Sequence record: NC_061450.1
DNA: 64,000 nucleotides
Strand: one strand, 5' to 3'
Shown piece after piece: positions 6,191 to 45,151 of the stretch (the first letter of the stretch is position 1; every line of letters starts with the position of its first letter). The translations under genes were made by a program, and so were the position numbers. The notes below the pieces were generated by a model, which was not told the origin of the DNA, searched no databases, and was given only the letters and a program-made list of their open reading frames with translations.

Positions 6191-6220
6191 AAAGGGCTGC
6201 CTTCGGGTGGCCCTTTTTCG
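6191..6220 (+). terminator. intrinsic terminator
   Basis: AAAGGGCTGCC-TTCG-GGTGGCCCTTTTT. Confidence 0.8.
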
Positions 6221-9242: not shown

Positions 9243-9294
9243 CAAATTGCTGGTCAAAATGTGAGTAGCATCGATCAGAACATTCTGATACACT
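9243..9294 (+). promoter_or_regulatory. sigma70-type early promoter with upstream element and spacer palindrome
   Basis: CAAAT-TGC-TGGTCAAAAT; -35 TAGCAT 9266; TGa-TACACT 9289; TCAGA-ACAT-TCTGA in the spacer. Confidence 0.7.
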
Positions 9295-37929: not shown

Positions 37930-38197
37930 AGACCTGCCGTTGAAAGTTCAAGTCATTGTCATGATGATGCACAGCATCGGTGTTTTGGAATCACTGTGTG
38001 AGTCGCAGAATCTGACTCAAAAGGATTTTGAAAACGTGGTTGCCGAAACTTACGCCGCCATAGGTGTTGAGGCCGACTATATGAAGCAACTCATTGATGG
38101 CCTGACTGCGGAAGAAGAACGGCTGATGAATGACTACCTCGATGATCACAACATGGAAGTTGAAGAAGACAACAGCAACGAACCAAAGGTACATTAA
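37919..38197 (+). CDS. hypothetical acidic protein
   Basis: AAGGAG SD. Confidence 0.75.
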   Translation: MEFKDLPLKVQVIVMMMHSIGVLESLCESQNLTQKDFENVVAETYAAIGVEADYMKQLIDGLTAEEERLMNDYLDDHNMEVEEDNSNEPKVH

Positions 38198-39180
38198 TGA
38201 AACATGTTTCTCTTCCCAAGCACGACGATACCACACGCGCTCTGTTGATTGATGGCCCAGTTTACGAAGGCTGGCTGATCTACGTTCCTTGCCGTTTGTC
38301 CAATGACAGAGAGCTGCAAATTCCCGTTGCATCCCGTGAGGGGTATGGTATTCACACTCGCAAGCAACCTATTCTCTTAATACCCGCACACGCCAAACCA
38401 GAACTAGCCATTGCTACTTTGCAGATACGTCGCATAGTGCATACCAAGAACTTGATGGAAGATACACCTCACTGCCATATCGATGATGCCGTTGCGATTG
38501 ACCTGACAAGCTACCGCGCAGGCTTGGGAGAAGCAAGCACGCGCACAGGACGATTCGCATATGTCTGGCCTCATGGGCGTGAGAAAAGTTTAGCGACAGG
38601 ACGCGCTATTCATGAACTGCGAATCGGAGCAGAATCCATTCACCATCCTGAGCTTGATGCAATTGAGCAGGCAGATATGGACGCTGCCCAGGCGGAACTT
38701 GATTTGCACAAGAGCTGGAAGAAGTTGTATTGTGACCACATCACAGGGCGCCTGACTATCGTGCTGCCTGGGATCGACACTGTTACAACCTATGCAGGCC
38801 AAGACTTGGATGAAATGCCCTTGGTATACTGCAAGTATATGCACACCGGTGCGGGTCGTGGACTAAACTCCGATGCCTTTAGTACCGACTATGCCGCCAA
38901 GCTGGCTCCAGTACGCCACGAGCTTATTCAGTTTATTGAAATGCTGAGTGGCATGTCCGCGATGGTAAGCAATGATATCGAGTTTACCTATGACGGCGCC
39001 ACTCCTTCGATCACGTTCAAGCACAAGGACAAACGTCTTGACCTGCGCGTTAACGATCTGCCTATGATTGGCCGCTTCCTTGTAGTTGACCCAAGCAAGG
39101 AAGATTTCGATAGCATGTTGACGACGTATGAAACCCTGACTCTGGCTATTAACTCAATCACCACGAGGTTGACACAATGA
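38197..39180 (+). CDS. hypothetical protein
   Basis: 327 aa; TAATG coupling. Confidence 0.85.
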   Translation: MKHVSLPKHDDTTRALLIDGPVYEGWLIYVPCRLSNDRELQIPVASREGYGIHTRKQPILLIPAHAKPELAIATLQIRRIVHTKNLMEDTPHCHIDDAVAIDLTSYRAGLGEASTRTGRFAYVWPHGREKSLATGRAIHELRIGAESIHHPELDAIEQADMDAAQAELDLHKSWKKLYCDHITGRLTIVLPGIDTVTTYAGQDLDEMPLVYCKYMHTGAGRGLNSDAFSTDYAAKLAPVRHELIQFIEMLSGMSAMVSNDIEFTYDGATPSITFKHKDKRLDLRVNDLPMIGRFLVVDPSKEDFDSMLTTYETLTLAINSITTRLTQ

Positions 39181-39563
39181 AAACTTATGACCCACGTTCA
39201 AAGCTGATTCGTACCAATAAGTCTGGACAAGCGCTGGTGGACGTTGCAGTGGGTGAAGACACCCAGACGGTTGCTTTTACCGTACCCAACGTTGTTATCG
39301 TTGCTGCTGTTGGTGAGTCGAGTAGTTGGTCCGGTCAGAAGTTCGATGGCTATGCTTACCTGCCAAATGCCGAAGCACTTAACGCATTTCGTGCGCATCT
39401 TGAAAAGACCAAGACGTATGAGGAGTATTCGTTTATCGTTGACGTAAGCCTCAAAGCTATCACGTCAGAGGGGATTGAGGTCATGCGTAGCAAGCTCACA
39501 GAATGCCCAGATCGTCCATGGCTGTGGGTAAACACTGATTTCTCATGCAAGCTGTGGGACTAA
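39177..39563 (+). CDS. hypothetical protein
   Basis: GAGG SD. Confidence 0.8.
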   Translation: MKTYDPRSKLIRTNKSGQALVDVAVGEDTQTVAFTVPNVVIVAAVGESSSWSGQKFDGYAYLPNAEALNAFRAHLEKTKTYEEYSFIVDVSLKAITSEGIEVMRSKLTECPDRPWLWVNTDFSCKLWD

Positions 39564-39569
39564 AAGCTG

Positions 39570-39621
39570 CAAATTGCTGGTCAAAATAGCTGTTGAACAA
39601 AAAGCTGTGTTTTGATAGAAT
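39570..39621 (+). promoter_or_regulatory. sigma70-type early promoter with upstream element
   Basis: CAAAT-TGC-TGGTCAAAAT; -35 TTGAAC 39593; 17 nt; TGa-TAGAAT 39616. Confidence 0.8.
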
Positions 39622-39652
39622 AGTAGTGGGAGGGCATTCAGCCTTCTCACTA

Positions 39653-40161
39653 TACAACGTCTGAGGAGACGCACAGTGACTCGAATGAATGAACGCCAGA
39701 AACACGAAGCACGTAATTCAGACCCATACGATTGGCACAACCTGGAAATTGATATCACCAAGCTGTTGTTGCTTGCCGAAGATAAAAGAAAGTCTGTGGT
39801 ATTTGCACCGATGAACTTATTTCCCAAGTTCACCGAGTACAACAATCTAGGCTACGTGTTGCACCAGCTCAATGATTTTCGTCTGAGTTCTTTAATGACT
39901 GAAAATGAGCGAATCAAAGGTCACTGGATTGCGACTGACGGTGATCATCTGGACTACGTTATTTTTCTGCGTCTGCCAGATGCAAACACCGAAGTAGATG
40001 TGTTTGACCCGCGTGACAGAGAGTTGGTCAAGGGGCGTATGCTTTCTCCTACCTTCCTGTGTATGCCTGAGAACTTCGATCTGTTTAAAACAGAAAGCCG
40101 CTAAACATCCGATGCCTGCTTATGCGGGCATTATCAAGTACAACGTCTGAGGAGACGCACA
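39653..40161 (+). repeat. 23-bp identical translation-initiation leader x2
   Basis: TACAACGTCTGAGGAGACGCACA at 39653-39675 and 40139-40161. Confidence 0.9.
39676..40104 (+). CDS. hypothetical early protein
   Basis: GAGGAG SD; GTG start. Confidence 0.8.
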   Translation: MTRMNERQKHEARNSDPYDWHNLEIDITKLLLLAEDKRKSVVFAPMNLFPKFTEYNNLGYVLHQLNDFRLSSLMTENERIKGHWIATDGDHLDYVIFLRLPDANTEVDVFDPRDRELVKGRMLSPTFLCMPENFDLFKTESR

Positions 40162-40671
40162 ATGAGTGAGACTATGAACCACCAGTTTGATGACGAGTCG
40201 CAAGTTGCAATCAACACCGCTGTTCAGGAGGTGCGCAACATTCTTGCCGAGACACCTGTGGCTCCAATTGATATCGCAATTGCAGGTGCTCGTGTTTATC
40301 TGACAGTTGCCGAGCATCTTGGTGGTCACCCGCTTGATGTGCGTTTCGTACATGACAACAAAATTGTTAGCATGGCAATGCGTGTTACTACCGTGCCTAG
40401 TGACCAAGAGTTCGAAGCCAACGGCATTAACATCGAACATCAAAAGATGTTGACGATGGCTATCATGGATGGATTCGACAAGGCTGTTGAACTGGAAGTC
40501 ATCAGCGGTTATGAGCAGGGCGCGATGTTTGTTGCTGCCTTGCGTGTGTTGTATATGGGATTGGTTGAAGACCCAAGTGTTAAGGAACTTAGATTCCGAC
40601 ACAGCCAGAAAAACAACGTGATCAACATTTTAAATCCTGCCAGAGGAAACTCCGAAAATGAGAACGGTTAA
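40162..40671 (+). CDS. hypothetical early protein
   Basis: GAGGAG SD. Confidence 0.8.
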   Translation: MSETMNHQFDDESQVAINTAVQEVRNILAETPVAPIDIAIAGARVYLTVAEHLGGHPLDVRFVHDNKIVSMAMRVTTVPSDQEFEANGINIEHQKMLTMAIMDGFDKAVELEVISGYEQGAMFVAALRVLYMGLVEDPSVKELRFRHSQKNNVINILNPARGNSENENG

Positions 40672-40846
40672 CGATATTATCAAGGTGCTGAAAGAGCAGC
40701 GAGTAGTTACCATCCCACAGAGTCAGAGCAGCATTGTTCCTGACCTGTGCTTCACACTTGACGTGTGGTGCATTCCTCACCGTCGTCGTGATGTAGACAG
40801 CTTACAACATGGCCGTCAGGTGCGTATTGAACTGCGGAATAGTTAA
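40658..40846 (+). CDS. hypothetical protein
   Basis: GAGGA SD. Confidence 0.65.
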   Translation: MRTVNDIIKVLKEQRVVTIPQSQSSIVPDLCFTLDVWCIPHRRRDVDSLQHGRQVRIELRNS

Positions 40847-40854
40847 GCAGCGTT

Positions 40855-40881
40855 TGGCCCAGCAATTTGGGCCATTCTTTT
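40855..40881 (+). terminator. intrinsic terminator
   Basis: TGGCCCA-GCAATT-TGGGCCA-TTCTTTT. Confidence 0.65.
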
Positions 40882-40934
40882 AAGTGTTGTTCAAGACAGC
40901 ATTTAGACGAATATTAACCTGCTATCAGAATCTA

Positions 40935-40986
40935 CAAATACGTGGACAAAAGACGCGTTGTATCACGTTACTGATTGTGAGATAAT
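40935..40986 (+). promoter_or_regulatory. sigma70-type early promoter with upstream element, not followed by an ORF
   Basis: CAAAT-ACG-TGGACAAAAG; -35 TTGTAT 40958; 17 nt; TGa-GATAAT 40981. Confidence 0.75.
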
Positions 40987-40991
40987 AGACG

Positions 40992-41089
40992 TGCAGTATG
41001 AGACGTGAGGAATCGTACTGTAATTGACTGACAACTCTTTGGGCGTACAATCGGCCATCAACATTCCTGTGATTGTACGCTCCTTTTTC
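40992..41089 (+). ncRNA. candidate ~97-nt small RNA
   Basis: Own promoter; 10-bp stem TGCAGTATGA/TCGTACTGTA with 2 G.U pairs; 12-bp terminator stem GGGCGTACAATC/GATTGTACGCTC plus CTTTTT. Confidence 0.55.
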
Positions 41090-41200
41090 AAGTGGCTTTG
41101 AAGTTTAAGGCTACTTGCGAAAGGGTTCGATACCCTTTGAGCGCTGCCGGATTTACGCGGTTTTCACCGACAGTGCTCTCATGCTAAACCGCAAAGGAAA
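41089..41200 (+). ncRNA. structured leader or ncRNA with T-loop hairpin
   Basis: CAAGTGGCTTT/AAGGCTACTTG (2 G.U); AAAGGG-TTCGATA-CCCTTT; GAGCGCTG/CAGTGCTC; alternative GCGGTTT/AAACCGC next to the SD. Confidence 0.5.
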
Positions 41201-41205
41201 TAACC

Positions 41206-41778
41206 ATGCCAGAATTACGCAAGCCTCGTCCAGCAGATAAATTCTCTCAGGCACGCGCTGCAAAGAACTCTCCTGAAAGGCAAGAAGCCGCTGCGCAAAA
41301 GAAAATCTCACGCGGGCCTAAAGCATCTGGTCCTCGTCGCAATGCTATGCAGTTAGAATCGCCGACTAAGATTCGCGATGAAGAACGTGTGTTGAATCTT
41401 GTGCTGTTTATTCTACGCGGCTGGAAACAAGCAAAGGCTGATAGTGAAGCCAGCGCCTCACAGGGCATTATCAAAGTGAGTCGCAAGGAAATTGAAATCG
41501 CATTGCGTGATCTTAAAAACACGCGCTTCACTAAAATCCCGACGTTGATTAATGACGTGCTGGTCTATAACGAAATCGTTGCCGAGTTCGGACAGTGGGT
41601 GTATGTCGAGCACGACCATCCAGACTGGATGTTCATCTTAACGCCTCCGAGTGAGACGTTGGTAACGCGCTGCCGCATTCGTCGCAACAAAGAGACAGGC
41701 GACCTGACGCAACTTATTGCAAGTGAAGCGTTGCTGCCTGTAGAGGACGAATATGAAGAAGACGAGGAGAAAGAATAA
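41206..41778 (+). CDS. hypothetical protein with Arg/Lys-rich N-terminal arm and acidic tail
   Basis: AAAGGA SD; MPELRKPRPADK..KKISRGPKASGPRRN. Confidence 0.85.
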   Translation: MPELRKPRPADKFSQARAAKNSPERQEAAAQKKISRGPKASGPRRNAMQLESPTKIRDEERVLNLVLFILRGWKQAKADSEASASQGIIKVSRKEIEIALRDLKNTRFTKIPTLINDVLVYNEIVAEFGQWVYVEHDHPDWMFILTPPSETLVTRCRIRRNKETGDLTQLIASEALLPVEDEYEEDEEKE

Positions 41779-42068
41779 TGACTATTCAAACTCCTGCTGT
41801 TGTTGCTGAGTCGCTGGTGCATAACGCCCAAAATTATTTTGGGATCAAAGGTAAGTCCTGTACGCGATTTTCAACGACAGAGAAAAACATTCTGTTGCTG
41901 AGTGGTCATAATCGCTATCTTCCTGACGACTATGTTGACCAGCTCAAGCGTTCTTTTCACGATATTGATTGGCTGATGTTTAAAGTTGGCACTGACGACT
42001 ATGCTTTTTTAAGTCTCAGTCAAACCAAAAACTGGTCGCGTCTGTCAATGAAATATCTCGATAAATAA
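41778..42068 (+). CDS. hypothetical protein
   Basis: GAGGAG SD; TAATG coupling. Confidence 0.8.
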   Translation: MTIQTPAVVAESLVHNAQNYFGIKGKSCTRFSTTEKNILLLSGHNRYLPDDYVDQLKRSFHDIDWLMFKVGTDDYAFLSLSQTKNWSRLSMKYLDK

Positions 42069-42080
42069 TTCCTGACAAAT

Positions 42081-42305
42081 AAGAGGGCATCGCATCAGGT
42101 GCCACGATTATAAACTGCAAGCGATTTGCTGGCCCCTGTGCTTACCCACATCCCCCAAGATACAGAGTTGCATTGGGTGCCGGCTCTTTTTTGAAGTGTT
42201 CTGCGAGAGAGCGCTTCACAAAGGTATAGTCCATGATTGTTTCACTTAGACTGCTTATCGTCTCTATGTCCGATGATACGCGTGGCGATAAGCAGTCACT
42301 TTTTT
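42081..42305 (+). ncRNA. candidate structured ncRNA with C-rich loop
   Basis: Nested AAGAG/CTCTT, GGCATC/GGTGCC, TGCAA/TTGCA, CTGTG/TACAG around loop CTTACCCACATCCCCCAAGA; then an 11-bp GCGA-capped hairpin (2 G.U) and a 12-bp perfect terminator stem plus T-run. Confidence 0.5.
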
Positions 42306-42334
42306 ACAGAGCATCAACCAGTCTGTGTTCTGTG

Positions 42335-42386
42335 CAAAAGCGTGGTCAAAATAGCTGTTGTGTTTGACCAGTCTTTATCGTACCAT
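42335..42386 (+). promoter_or_regulatory. sigma70-type early promoter with upstream element
   Basis: CAAAA-GCG-TGGTCAAAAT; -35 TTGTGT 42358; 17 nt; TACCAT 42381. Confidence 0.7.
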
Positions 42387-42446
42387 ATAAACAGTTGAGC
42401 AATAGTGCTCAACACATTGCATATACTAATACTGAGGAGTATTAAC

Positions 42447-43955
42447 ATGGCTCGTATCGAAACTTCTACTAACCTGATTGGCAAAACTATCACTCTGCTG
42501 GACGGCACCAAAGCTAAAATCACTGGCGCCATCGCTAGTGGTTATCAGCACGACAAAGGCACCAAGCGCATCCCAACCCGTTGCGTCGTTAAGAAAGGCA
42601 GTGGTTTTGCTGAAATCGAAAAGCTGCCTATGTCGCAACTGACTGACACTGGCGAAGGTTATGTTGAGCGTAAAGCAACCGCTGCCAAGCCTGCTGCTAA
42701 AACTTCGAAAGCAGCCAAGACCACTAAGGTGGCCGCTAAAACTCCGCGTGCTGCTAAAACTGAAAAAGCCGTCAAGCCTTCTCGCAAGGCAAAAGCTGCC
42801 GAAGAGCCTGCCGAGCCACGCACTCGCGTTCGTCGTAAAAAATCAGCCGCTGCTGAGCCTGTAATGATTCAGGCAGTCGATGAAGATTTTGCTACCTCTC
42901 TGGCGCAGCGCCTGTTTGAGCACCTGAAAGATAACGAACTGTTGCGCCTCAACACTGACAACGCAACGCCTGTAGCTAACGACTACGATCTGAAATACGG
43001 CGTAGAGTTCGCTGAGCCGAACATGATTCACGTCACGCTGGGCATCGAATACGCCATGCCGCAGCCTGAGCCAGAAGCTGGCACTGACGTAGAGCTGGAC
43101 GATGCAGTTGTTGCGCGTGCTGCTAAGAAAGTCGGCAAGACTGTTGGCAAGAAACTTGCCGCAGCGATCAAGAAAGCGTATGGCATCCCTGCTGCTGAGT
43201 TCCTGCCGGGCACCGTGCTGTCACTCAACGAAGCCCAGTTCATCTACTGCGGCCCGTCGAAAGATGATGCAGACACTGCGTATCTGTACAGCGCCGAAAC
43301 TGATAAGTTCCGTCCTGTGACTTCTGTCAATCTGTCCAAGTATGAGCTGGTCATGGACGATGAAGAGGCAGAAGAGGAAGAGGAAGAGGAAGAAGAGGAC
43401 GAAGAAGAAGAGGACGTCGCTGATGATTCTTCCGATGAATATACCTACGTCTCTGTGACTAAGCAGCATCTGGCAGACGTTAGCAAAAGCGTGACCGCCA
43501 AGTATCACCAGAAGATGGCTGATATGTGGGGCATCGATGCAGACGTGCTGGTCCCTGGTCTGGTACTGTCAGATGGCGAAACAACATTCGCATACGTCGG
43601 CTTCAACAGCAAAGGCGCGTTAATCGTTATCGACCCAGAAGATGGCGAACTGATGATCTACAAGAAAGCCGACGTTGACACGCTGACCGACTTCGCTGCT
43701 GTTATCGGCGATGAGGGCGAAGAAGAAGCAGAAGACGACGCCGAAGAAGAAGAAGATGGCGACGACGAAGAAGAGGAAGAGGAAGAAGAGGAAGGCGAAG
43801 ACGACGACTTTGATTTCTCTGATGACGACAACGAAGACTTCTCTGACCTGAACCACGACGAGCTGGTGGACAAAGTGACTGAGCTGGGTCTGGCCAAGCC
43901 ACGCGCTGCTGCTAAAATGTCAGAAGAAGACCTGCGCGAACTTCTGTCTAACTAA
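42447..43955 (+). CDS. multidomain protein with K/A-rich linker, two poly-acidic tracts and HeH-like C-terminus
   Basis: GAGGAG SD; composition; paralogous to 44018. Confidence 0.85.
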   Translation: MARIETSTNLIGKTITLLDGTKAKITGAIASGYQHDKGTKRIPTRCVVKKGSGFAEIEKLPMSQLTDTGEGYVERKATAAKPAAKTSKAAKTTKVAAKTPRAAKTEKAVKPSRKAKAAEEPAEPRTRVRRKKSAAAEPVMIQAVDEDFATSLAQRLFEHLKDNELLRLNTDNATPVANDYDLKYGVEFAEPNMIHVTLGIEYAMPQPEPEAGTDVELDDAVVARAAKKVGKTVGKKLAAAIKKAYGIPAAEFLPGTVLSLNEAQFIYCGPSKDDADTAYLYSAETDKFRPVTSVNLSKYELVMDDEEAEEEEEEEEEDEEEEDVADDSSDEYTYVSVTKQHLADVSKSVTAKYHQKMADMWGIDADVLVPGLVLSDGETTFAYVGFNSKGALIVIDPEDGELMIYKKADVDTLTDFAAVIGDEGEEEAEDDAEEEEDGDDEEEEEEEEEGEDDDFDFSDDDNEDFSDLNHDELVDKVTELGLAKPRAAAKMSEEDLRELLSN

Positions 43956-44017
43956 TCGAACAACCGGGCGCCCGCCGCAGGGCGCTTAACTCATTTCATA
44001 TTCTGGAGACTTACGAT

Positions 44018-45151
44018 ATGGCGAAGGCTAAATCAATCCAAACGACCAACACCAATCTGCTGTATGCTCGTGTTGTTCGTGCTGACGGTACTAAAACGTT
44101 CATCAACAAAATCAACGCCAACGGTTACGGCACTGACGCGAAAGGTGGTCAGATTCACAAAACGCGTATCGTCCAGGCAGGCAAAACTTTGCGTGAACTG
44201 CCAGAAGCTATGGCGAAAGGTGAGTTTGTTCTTGTCGGTGGTATCGCGCACAAGCTCAACAAAAAACAACAGCGTGGCCTTGCGTCTGGTGACGATGCGT
44301 TTCTCGATGATATCAATGTTGACCTCGATCGTCTGCAATTCGTTGAGCCTGAGACTGCGACAACCGGCCGTCGTGCTACTCTGCATACGCCAGAGACTAT
44401 CGCAAAGCGTGTGTCCAAGCGTGCTCTGAAATCAGCAACAGAAAAAGCTGAGAAACAGCCCAGCGCCAAGCGTTCACGCAAAGCAGCAAAAGCTGAGGGC
44501 ATTGAGGTTGATATGCTCGACAAGAAATCACAGACAGCCACACGCAAGCGTGATCGTAAAGCCGCATCCGATACATCTGTGATTAAGCAGATGCCACGCG
44601 AGTTAAAGCGGCTTATCAGTGACGGCCAGATCAAGCTCAACAGCAAGCAAGCTGAACAGGTGCTGACAAGTCTGGGGCTTGACGCTGAGTTTTACGCTAT
44701 GTCCATTGAGAAACATTTCGGTGGTCTGAGTCTTGTACTGCCTCAACGTGAAGCGCCTGTAGAGAAGAAAGGCAAACGTGCTTCTACCAAAGAGCCGACG
44801 TATGTTGCTGCCAAGCAGGTCAAGCAGTTGGTCAAGAATCTCAAAACCCGTCTGGTACCGCCTACAGCAAAGTTCGCCGCTCAGCACAAAAAGAAACTTA
44901 AGGAAGTGCGTGAGTTCTGGAGCAAGGCTCTGGGCATGAGTTCTCACAAGGACGTCAAGCCCGGCCTGACAGTTATCGACGACTACGGTAACAAGTTAGT
45001 GCTGGTAGCGATTGACGCTGTATCAACAGTGTTCGCTCCAGCCAAGAAAGACGGCGATGAGCGTTTGTTTGCTCATGCCCTTCTCAATCAGAACGGCAGC
45101 CCACGTCACTTTAAGCTGGCACCTGCTGATGAACTGGATGCGTCCGTATGA
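44018..45151 (+). CDS. basic K/A-rich protein, paralog of 42447
   Basis: GGAG SD; shared TNL..DGTK..I...GY..D N-domain. Confidence 0.85.
   Translation: MAKAKSIQTTNTNLLYARVVRADGTKTFINKINANGYGTDAKGGQIHKTRIVQAGKTLRELPEAMAKGEFVLVGGIAHKLNKKQQRGLASGDDAFLDDINVDLDRLQFVEPETATTGRRATLHTPETIAKRVSKRALKSATEKAEKQPSAKRSRKAAKAEGIEVDMLDKKSQTATRKRDRKAASDTSVIKQMPRELKRLISDGQIKLNSKQAEQVLTSLGLDAEFYAMSIEKHFGGLSLVLPQREAPVEKKGKRASTKEPTYVAAKQVKQLVKNLKTRLVPPTAKFAAQHKKKLKEVREFWSKALGMSSHKDVKPGLTVIDDYGNKLVLVAIDAVSTVFAPAKKDGDERLFAHALLNQNGSPRHFKLAPADELDASV

Follow-up and report, generated by a model that had tools for sequence, protein, structure and literature searches.

The segment 42081-42305 of the Erwinia amylovora jumbo phage pEa_SNUABM_5 (hereafter SNU5; genus Rivsvirus; MW366843) is probably a cis-acting transcription boundary, that is, a terminator/insulator array in which an RNA cassette specific to the clade occurs twice in tandem. 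In each copy, an intrinsic terminator of unusual length, with a large loop that is pyrimidine- or C-rich and conserved in sequence, would be followed by a hairpin capturing the U-tract of that terminator, in the order T1-H2 and then T2-H3. The window analysed here covers the last 64 kb of the phage genome; an 801-nt query taken around the segment matched MW366843 at 100%. The segment is located in the 378-nt spacer between gp329 and gp330. The features of this spacer and of the genes on both sides are as follows.

41778-42068, + strand: gp329, 96 aa, annotated as hypothetical, final gene of the upstream early unit
42042-42069, + strand: weak sigma-70-like match (CTGTCA-16-AATAAT) overlapping the gp329 stop, predicted RNA start near 42076
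42073-42114, + strand: P1, degenerate copy of the early promoter (TGACAAAT ... TATAAA), transcription start near 42120 if active
42085-42105, + strand: hairpin 0, loop GCAUCA, within the P1 spacer / gp329 3' UTR
42128-42192, + strand: T1, intrinsic terminator whose long stem carries a C-rich loop of 28 nt, U-tract at 42185-42192
42186-42224, + strand: H2, "U-tract clamp" hairpin, 16 bp in all
42225-42248, + strand: spacer between the cassettes, containing the start of a non-conserved 44-aa ORF
42249-42305, + strand: T2, terminator (stem of 14 bp, loop of 21 nt, tail ACUUUUUU)
42306-42340, + strand: H3, looser second hairpin with the T2 U-tract on one side and CAAAAG on the other, evidenced by two sequences only
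42344-42391, + strand: P2, predicted gp330 promoter, GGTCAAAATAGC followed by TTGTGT-17-TACCAT or TTGACC-16-TATAAA
42394-42446, + strand: gp330 leader, with a 5' hairpin (42394-42413) and a hairpin presenting GAGGAG in its loop (42428-42443)
42447-43955, + strand: gp330, annotated as hypothetical

Structure of the gp329-gp330 spacer

The segment 42081-42305 is a genuine RNA structure, specific to the + strand. Its + strand folded at -82 kcal/mol (z -5.02, 0 of 200 shuffles as good) versus -60.8 kcal/mol for the - strand (z -0.61, 51 of 200 shuffles as good), and the whole gp329-gp330 spacer gave the same contrast between strands. The wobbles fall on the + strand as G.U pairs, as had been stated in a sequence-only reading of this DNA, which had also proposed a structured non-coding RNA. 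Both the folding and the reading frames agree with that proposal. Two frames were tried as a small protein gene and rejected, the 44-aa ORF at 42233-42367 and the ATGTCCGATGA frame (MSD...), neither being kept in Yoloswag, the closest sequenced relative of SNU5. An Rfam scan of 40000-44000 with E values up to 10 gave chance-level matches only, none of them in 42069-42448, and ARAGORN called no tRNA in 38000-45000.

The T1 stem is formed by 42128-42141 and 42170-42184 (13 pairs with two small interruptions, -21.5 kcal/mol). It encloses the 28-nt loop 42142-42169, which contains CUUACCCACAUCCCCCAAG, and is followed by UCUUUUUU at 42185-42192, so that the C-rich loop and the U-tract ending noticed earlier are both in place. 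The "~110-nt nested stem" described with them was correct in its elements, but it is actually a 57-nt terminator hairpin and the separate hairpin 0, with weak outer pairs. Hairpin 0 comes directly after the gp329 stop and is a candidate 3'-UTR element or promoter-spacer dyad. The T2 stem (42249-42262 with 42284-42297, -23.3 kcal/mol) is the perfect 12-bp terminator of the first reading, extended to 14 bp when a U.G and a C-G pair are counted, and its loop carries AUGUCCGAUGA at 42266-42276, invariant between SNU5 and Yoloswag. Between the two terminators, the inner hairpin of H2 (42192-42218) has 11 bp and a GCGAG loop or, alternatively, a GCGA tetraloop closed by U.G, which corresponds to the GCGA-capped 11-bp hairpin already recognized. 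The H2 core stem AAGUG...YGCUU is lengthened because the U-tract of T1 pairs with an AAAGG further downstream, and helices in the H2 family reach 16-19 bp in this way. H3 has the layout of H2 with a different sequence.

T1 and T2 display the anatomy of intrinsic terminators, i.e., a G+C-rich hairpin with a U-tract immediately 3', with loops of 28 and 21 nt, respectively, which are not short. In a whole-genome scan, the ordinary terminators of the phage had 7-9-bp G+C stems and UUCG tetraloops; the three terminators of this region (41084, 42187, and 42300) had 13-18 pairs and 13-25 unpaired bases. Efficient terminators do not typically have loops as large as 21-28 nt, so the conserved loops suggest a function beyond stopping the polymerase. 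The C-rich, G-poor T1 loop (42142-42169) recalls the style of Rho-loading (rut) sites such as rutA of lambda tR1, possibly by coincidence. Compact terminators of one and the same sequence, in which a UUCG loop caps a G+C stem of 8 bp, recur on both strands, at genome positions 209383(+), which is window position 6214, and 156715(-), outside the window; they represent the standard type of the phage. A multisubunit-type RNA polymerase (Rpb2-type domain) was searched for in the phage and not found, so host RNA polymerase and intrinsic termination should apply.

Conservation, repetition and shuffling of the cassettes

The stems are maintained by compensatory changes. In an alignment of H2 (A2, nine sequences from five lineages), 92.9% of the cells pair and 5 pairs are changed on both sides, and in an alignment of T2-family stems (A4, ten sequences) 100% of the cells pair and 10 of 10 pairs are changed on both sides, these alignments being hand-picked from model matches and representing few independent lineages. 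The covariation score of H2 was 0.384, versus 0.195 in shuffled alignments (0 of 500 as high) and at most 0.142 with the partners slid. Both T2 and H2 are kept in Yoloswag, where the T2 stem differs by four double compensatory changes and H2 by one double and one single change. Conservation of loop and stems was the point on which the earlier proposal could have failed; the stems were found to covary, and the C-run loop recurs in Yoloswag, phB78, and AD1.

Every H2 copy begins at the U-tract of a terminator. A covariance model (R1) built on this hairpin found three copies in SNU5 (40874, 41082, and 42186), all within 1.4 kb. The copy at 42186 scored 52 bits on the + strand and 28.9 on the - strand. 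The + strand was higher in every case, by about 20 bits, an excess to be expected from the many G.U pairs. The two other copies are the following.

40874-40912, + strand: H2 paralogue u0, behind the gp327 terminator, 35.5 bits
41082-41124, + strand: H2 paralogue u1, in the gp328 leader behind the terminator belonging to the 40944 promoter unit, 49.6 bits

Yoloswag has 4 copies, phB78 2, and SNUABM_13/45 2, and at least one copy each is present in Y3, Alexandra, SNUABM_2/17, AD1, and Yen9-02. The matches are confined to the same neighbourhood in each relative searched and occur essentially nowhere else. A short blastn search of 42115-42345 against phages returned the query itself only, exact-pattern scans of viral contigs gave Yoloswag plus chance matches, and a search with the gp330 protein for further relatives among viral and metagenome contigs gave none that was confirmed.

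Since H2 is formed only after read-through and buries the U-tract, we favour for it a role in the fate of read-through RNAs. In the proposed model, transcripts that pass a terminator fold H2 or H3 and probably meet a different fate, by protection from RNase E/Hfq or by cleavage by RNase III. A narrower reading holds the 16-19-bp H2 helix, completed only once the terminator has been passed, to be a processing site specific to read-through in the manner of lambda sib, where RNase III would cut H2, or H2 would keep RNase E/Hfq away from the U-tract, so that RNAs would differ in stability according to whether they were terminated or read through. Covariation keeps the extended helix, including the U-tract, and the pair at the core/clamp junction occurs as AU, CG, GC, and UA. 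Also, in phB78, Y3, and AD1, H2 stands about 20 nt before an A/C-rich leader with a strong Shine-Dalgarno sequence. However, the helix is at the low end of length for RNase III, and we regard this reading, which refines the transcription boundary rather than being a true alternative to it, as rather improbable in its own right.

The loops of the big-loop terminators are rich in pyrimidines, and part of their sequence is shared between lineages; the C-rich loop is therefore no accident of one genome.

UUUUCCCGG: terminator loop of Alexandra, SNUABM_2, SNUABM_17, AD1, and phB78
CUUUUCCCCCG: terminator loop of Y3
AUUCCCCAAG and CACCCCCAAUG: terminator loops of those cassettes in phB78 and AD1 that align, in their H2, with the H2 at 42186-42224
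AUCCCCCAAG: terminator loop of the cassette under study in pEa_SNUABM_5

C-run motifs are thus present in several lineages, namely in SNU5 T1, in the Yoloswag cassette "a", in the phB78_x and AD1_b cassettes, whose loops contain YCCCCAA, and in Y3. T1 itself is absent from the syntenic Yoloswag spacer, which implies that two terminators are not required. Its Yoloswag homologue is the cassette "a", located 1.6 kb upstream with its own H2 behind it; the stem sequence is different and the loop motif CAUCCC(C/U)CC...ACAGAG is common to both.

The position of the cassettes relative to genes differs between lineages, as does the gene content between H2 copies. For example, SNU5 42176-42223 aligns to a phB78 cassette placed before two other genes, the counterpart of the T1-H2 cassette in phB78, AD1, and Y3 precedes other small genes, and the phB78 cassette adjoining gp330 corresponds to the SNU5 gp328 leader without gp328. 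Yoloswag, SNUABM_13, and Alexandra all keep gp328, whereas for gp329 the sole relative is a weak one, Yoloswag gp313 (29% identity). The public sequencing runs recovered were all on record as DNA, and four of them contained metagenomic relatives 95-99% identical to SNU5, compared over 901 letters of DNA contigs through difference tables and 30-nt ends. In two of these contigs, homology breaks inside the spacer, at 42070 (X7) and at 42105 (X8), so that in these few examples junctions of the mosaic seem to coincide with the cassette array. In the 30 nt of X8 seen at the position of hairpin 0, stem bases are changed and the hairpin is retained, with a GCAACA loop.

The array could also be a non-functional remnant, a scar of regulatory cassettes left by gene turnover. 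P1 is degenerate, and the T1-H2-T2-H3 arrangement of SNU5 looks as if two cassettes, between which phB78 has genes, had been fused. However, all the stems are intact and show compensatory changes across lineages, and four near relatives had 0 substitutions in 42086-42247, a result of little weight, as just about 2-3 were expected. We hold such a decayed origin to be very improbable.

Two annotations in relatives overlap these elements. The SNUABM_13 record carries a 95-nt "tRNA-Glu(ttc)" exactly over the terminator-H2 cassette and the GGGUUCGAUACCC hairpin of a gp328-type leader; this is probably a false tRNA call, doubted because ARAGORN calls none at the homologous place in the window. Yoloswag gp311 is annotated with 65 aa, but its frame runs into a terminator-H2 cassette and into the gp312 leader, which is conserved; gp311 is likely not a gene.

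Predicted promoters and termination, and possible short RNAs

A promoter motif accompanies the cassettes. The consensus of 18 sites in the relatives, CTGGACAAAAT-N3-GGTTGT-N19-TATACT, has the form of a sigma-70 promoter preceded by an A-rich element. On the + strand of the window, members of this early-promoter family occur at 9252, 25382, 39579, 40944, and 42344, with GG(A/T)CAAAA(T/G), a TTG-type -35, and a TAnAnT -10; GGTCAAAATAGC has exactly three occurrences, all in the last quarter of the genome, and many copies have a hairpin-forming dyad spanning the -35 and the spacer. The P2 motif precedes the gp330 homologue in all the relatives and comes directly after T2-H3 in SNU5. In the gp330 leader, the Shine-Dalgarno sequence GAGGAG is the loop of a 6-bp hairpin, AAUACU/AGUAUU (42428-42443), found near letter-for-letter in 51 phage records (Erwinia, Dickeya, and Yersinia hosts).

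Upstream of T1, a good copy of P1 is found in Yoloswag, Y3, SNUABM_13/45, and phB78, just after the upstream gene and 50-125 nt before the terminator, whereas P1 of SNU5 lacks both the -35 and the key final T of the -10. The match at 42042 agrees at 9 of 12 positions, is no more frequent than in shuffles, and is not kept in Yoloswag. An RNA that ends at T1 could thus have a start of its own, but this is doubtful. There is no terminator between the gp329 stop codon and T1, and therefore transcription of gp328-329 must reach T1.

We hypothesize that T1 and T2 stop host RNA polymerase arriving from the gp328-329 early unit and, should the weak P1 be active, from there as well, and that this unit would thereby be insulated from the separately promoted gp330. 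RNAs ended at T1 or T2 would bear a big-loop hairpin at their 3' end. The cassettes and the common sigma-70-type promoter motif, repeated around the small variable genes of the region, may serve as linkers for the gain, loss, and exchange of gene cassettes. Membership of the element in a repeated family of terminator cassettes points to a role in transcription, in cis.

The sequence-only reading had instead proposed a 3'-derived sRNA that blocks host translation initiation or sponges a G-rich RNA. In this reading, a trans-acting RNA of about 70-125 nt ending at T1, or of about 185-230 nt ending at T2, would come from P1, from the 42042 promoter, or from processing of the gp329 3' UTR, and its C-run or UYCC loop would pair with G-rich sites (Shine-Dalgarno) or titrate a host factor. 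The large loops are indeed conserved in sequence while the stems covary, with C-run motifs recurring in several lineages, and the promoter of Yoloswag, Y3, SNUABM_13, and phB78 is well placed for such RNAs. Most terminator hairpins of the family also have a U-rich stretch 5' and a poly-U tail 3', which is the layout of Hfq-type sRNAs. The segment is at the 3' end of the gp328-329 unit, where a 3'-UTR RNA ending at T1 would be expected. However, T1 is missing at the syntenic Yoloswag site and the SNU5 promoter is degenerate. Also, 9- and 10-mer complements of the T1 and T2 loops in the phage genome were at or below shuffle expectation, none of them at a start site, so that no complementary target stands out there for pairing or sponging. 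We consider this reading unlikely, and an sRNA that is discrete, processed, or acting in trans is unsupported; what survives of the idea appears to be the conserved C-rich loop. It is likewise rather doubtful that the UYCC and C-run loops are conserved because short early RNAs act in trans, as anti-Shine-Dalgarno or G-rich-RNA binders or as host-factor decoys, with the H2 clamp as a fate switch for read-through.

T1 and T2 could also be regulated attenuators holding the units off until a phage or host antitermination factor acts, as for lambda PR'-tR' with Q or HK022 put, with H2 or the conserved loops as the recognition element. The layout of promoter, short RNA, terminator, and gene is found in all lineages, no second promoter was seen for the gp328 homologues, and the 5'-UTR terminators of phiKZ display two strict read-through modes (PMC10914365). 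Nevertheless, gp330 has its own promoter P2 downstream of T2, H2 comes after the terminator, which is the wrong order for nut/put-type elements, and no antiterminator gene was identified. Attenuation of this kind seems quite improbable to us.

Likeness to known systems and significance

The closest parallel to the proposed boundary may be the PeSL cassettes of T4-type phages, composed of a strong sigma-70 promoter and a stem-loop terminator, which mediate modular shuffling (PMC2839356; PMC4122927). Both systems combine a sigma-70-like early promoter, an A-rich upstream element, and a stem-loop terminator or attenuator (PMC2839356; PMC4122927). Both occur in many copies around ORFans of a hyperplastic region, as with the three H2 copies in 1.4 kb. 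In T4-type phages, junctions of insertion, deletion, or replacement fall in the cassettes; the two contigs and the absence of gp328 beside its leader cassette in phB78 may be a few examples of the like here. However, SNU5 belongs to another phage clade without sequence similarity, and the link is one of analogy. The SNU5 terminators are long ones in which big loops are conserved, a further conserved hairpin, H2, acts as a clamp on the U-tract, and most cassette copies of this clade transcribe 50-125 nt between promoter and terminator.

The phiKZ 5'-UTR RNAs of 71 and 141 nt, which arise by premature termination, were revealed by long-read RNA-seq and Northern blot, and abundant short RNAs of such a layout, which also speak for the sRNA reading, are proven in phiKZ and other phages (PMC10914365). 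As in these virulent Pseudomonas phages, a promoter, a terminator within 250 nt, and a gene follow one another, with conservation within the genus, and an abundant short structured RNA, predicted here, would accompany a read-through mRNA (PMC10914365). The Pseudomonas phage RNAs are proven transcripts (PMC10914365), whereas those of SNU5 are predicted; also, the SNU5 unit has a degenerate promoter and two terminators in tandem. An sRNA with a C-rich loop is not documented in the phiKZ dRNA-seq paper (PMC8244752).

The arrangement of H2 can be set beside another, well-known case. In the retroregulation of lambda by tI/sib, a helix is completed only on read-through of the terminator, which separates terminated from read-through RNAs. 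The H2 helix is likewise completed only upon read-through, but sib extends the terminator stem itself, whereas here a separate hairpin recruits the U-tract. RNAIII of S. aureus and the 3'-UTR-derived sRNAs of enterobacteria have a C-run in a hairpin loop, a location at the 3' end of an operon, and a terminator end. The C-run of SNU5 differs in being in the terminator loop itself, and in having been read from DNA only.

Short terminated RNAs before phage genes are common, and we know of none with a function. The cassette described here combines features that evolution has maintained and that are easily mutated, a loop that is conserved although its stem covaries and a U-tract-capturing hairpin, and thus offers a convenient model for asking what purpose short terminated RNAs serve, and by what means jumbo phages exchange small early genes while the expression of neighbouring genes stays undisturbed. 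Even if the array is a terminator/insulator only, its description is of use for annotation, as a tRNA and small ORFs recorded in relatives prove spurious, and it establishes which early promoters and terminators belong to a group of phages used in the biocontrol of fire blight. If the trans-acting loops and the H2 switch were true, they would constitute a previously undescribed phage system joining termination, RNA fate, and host take-over.
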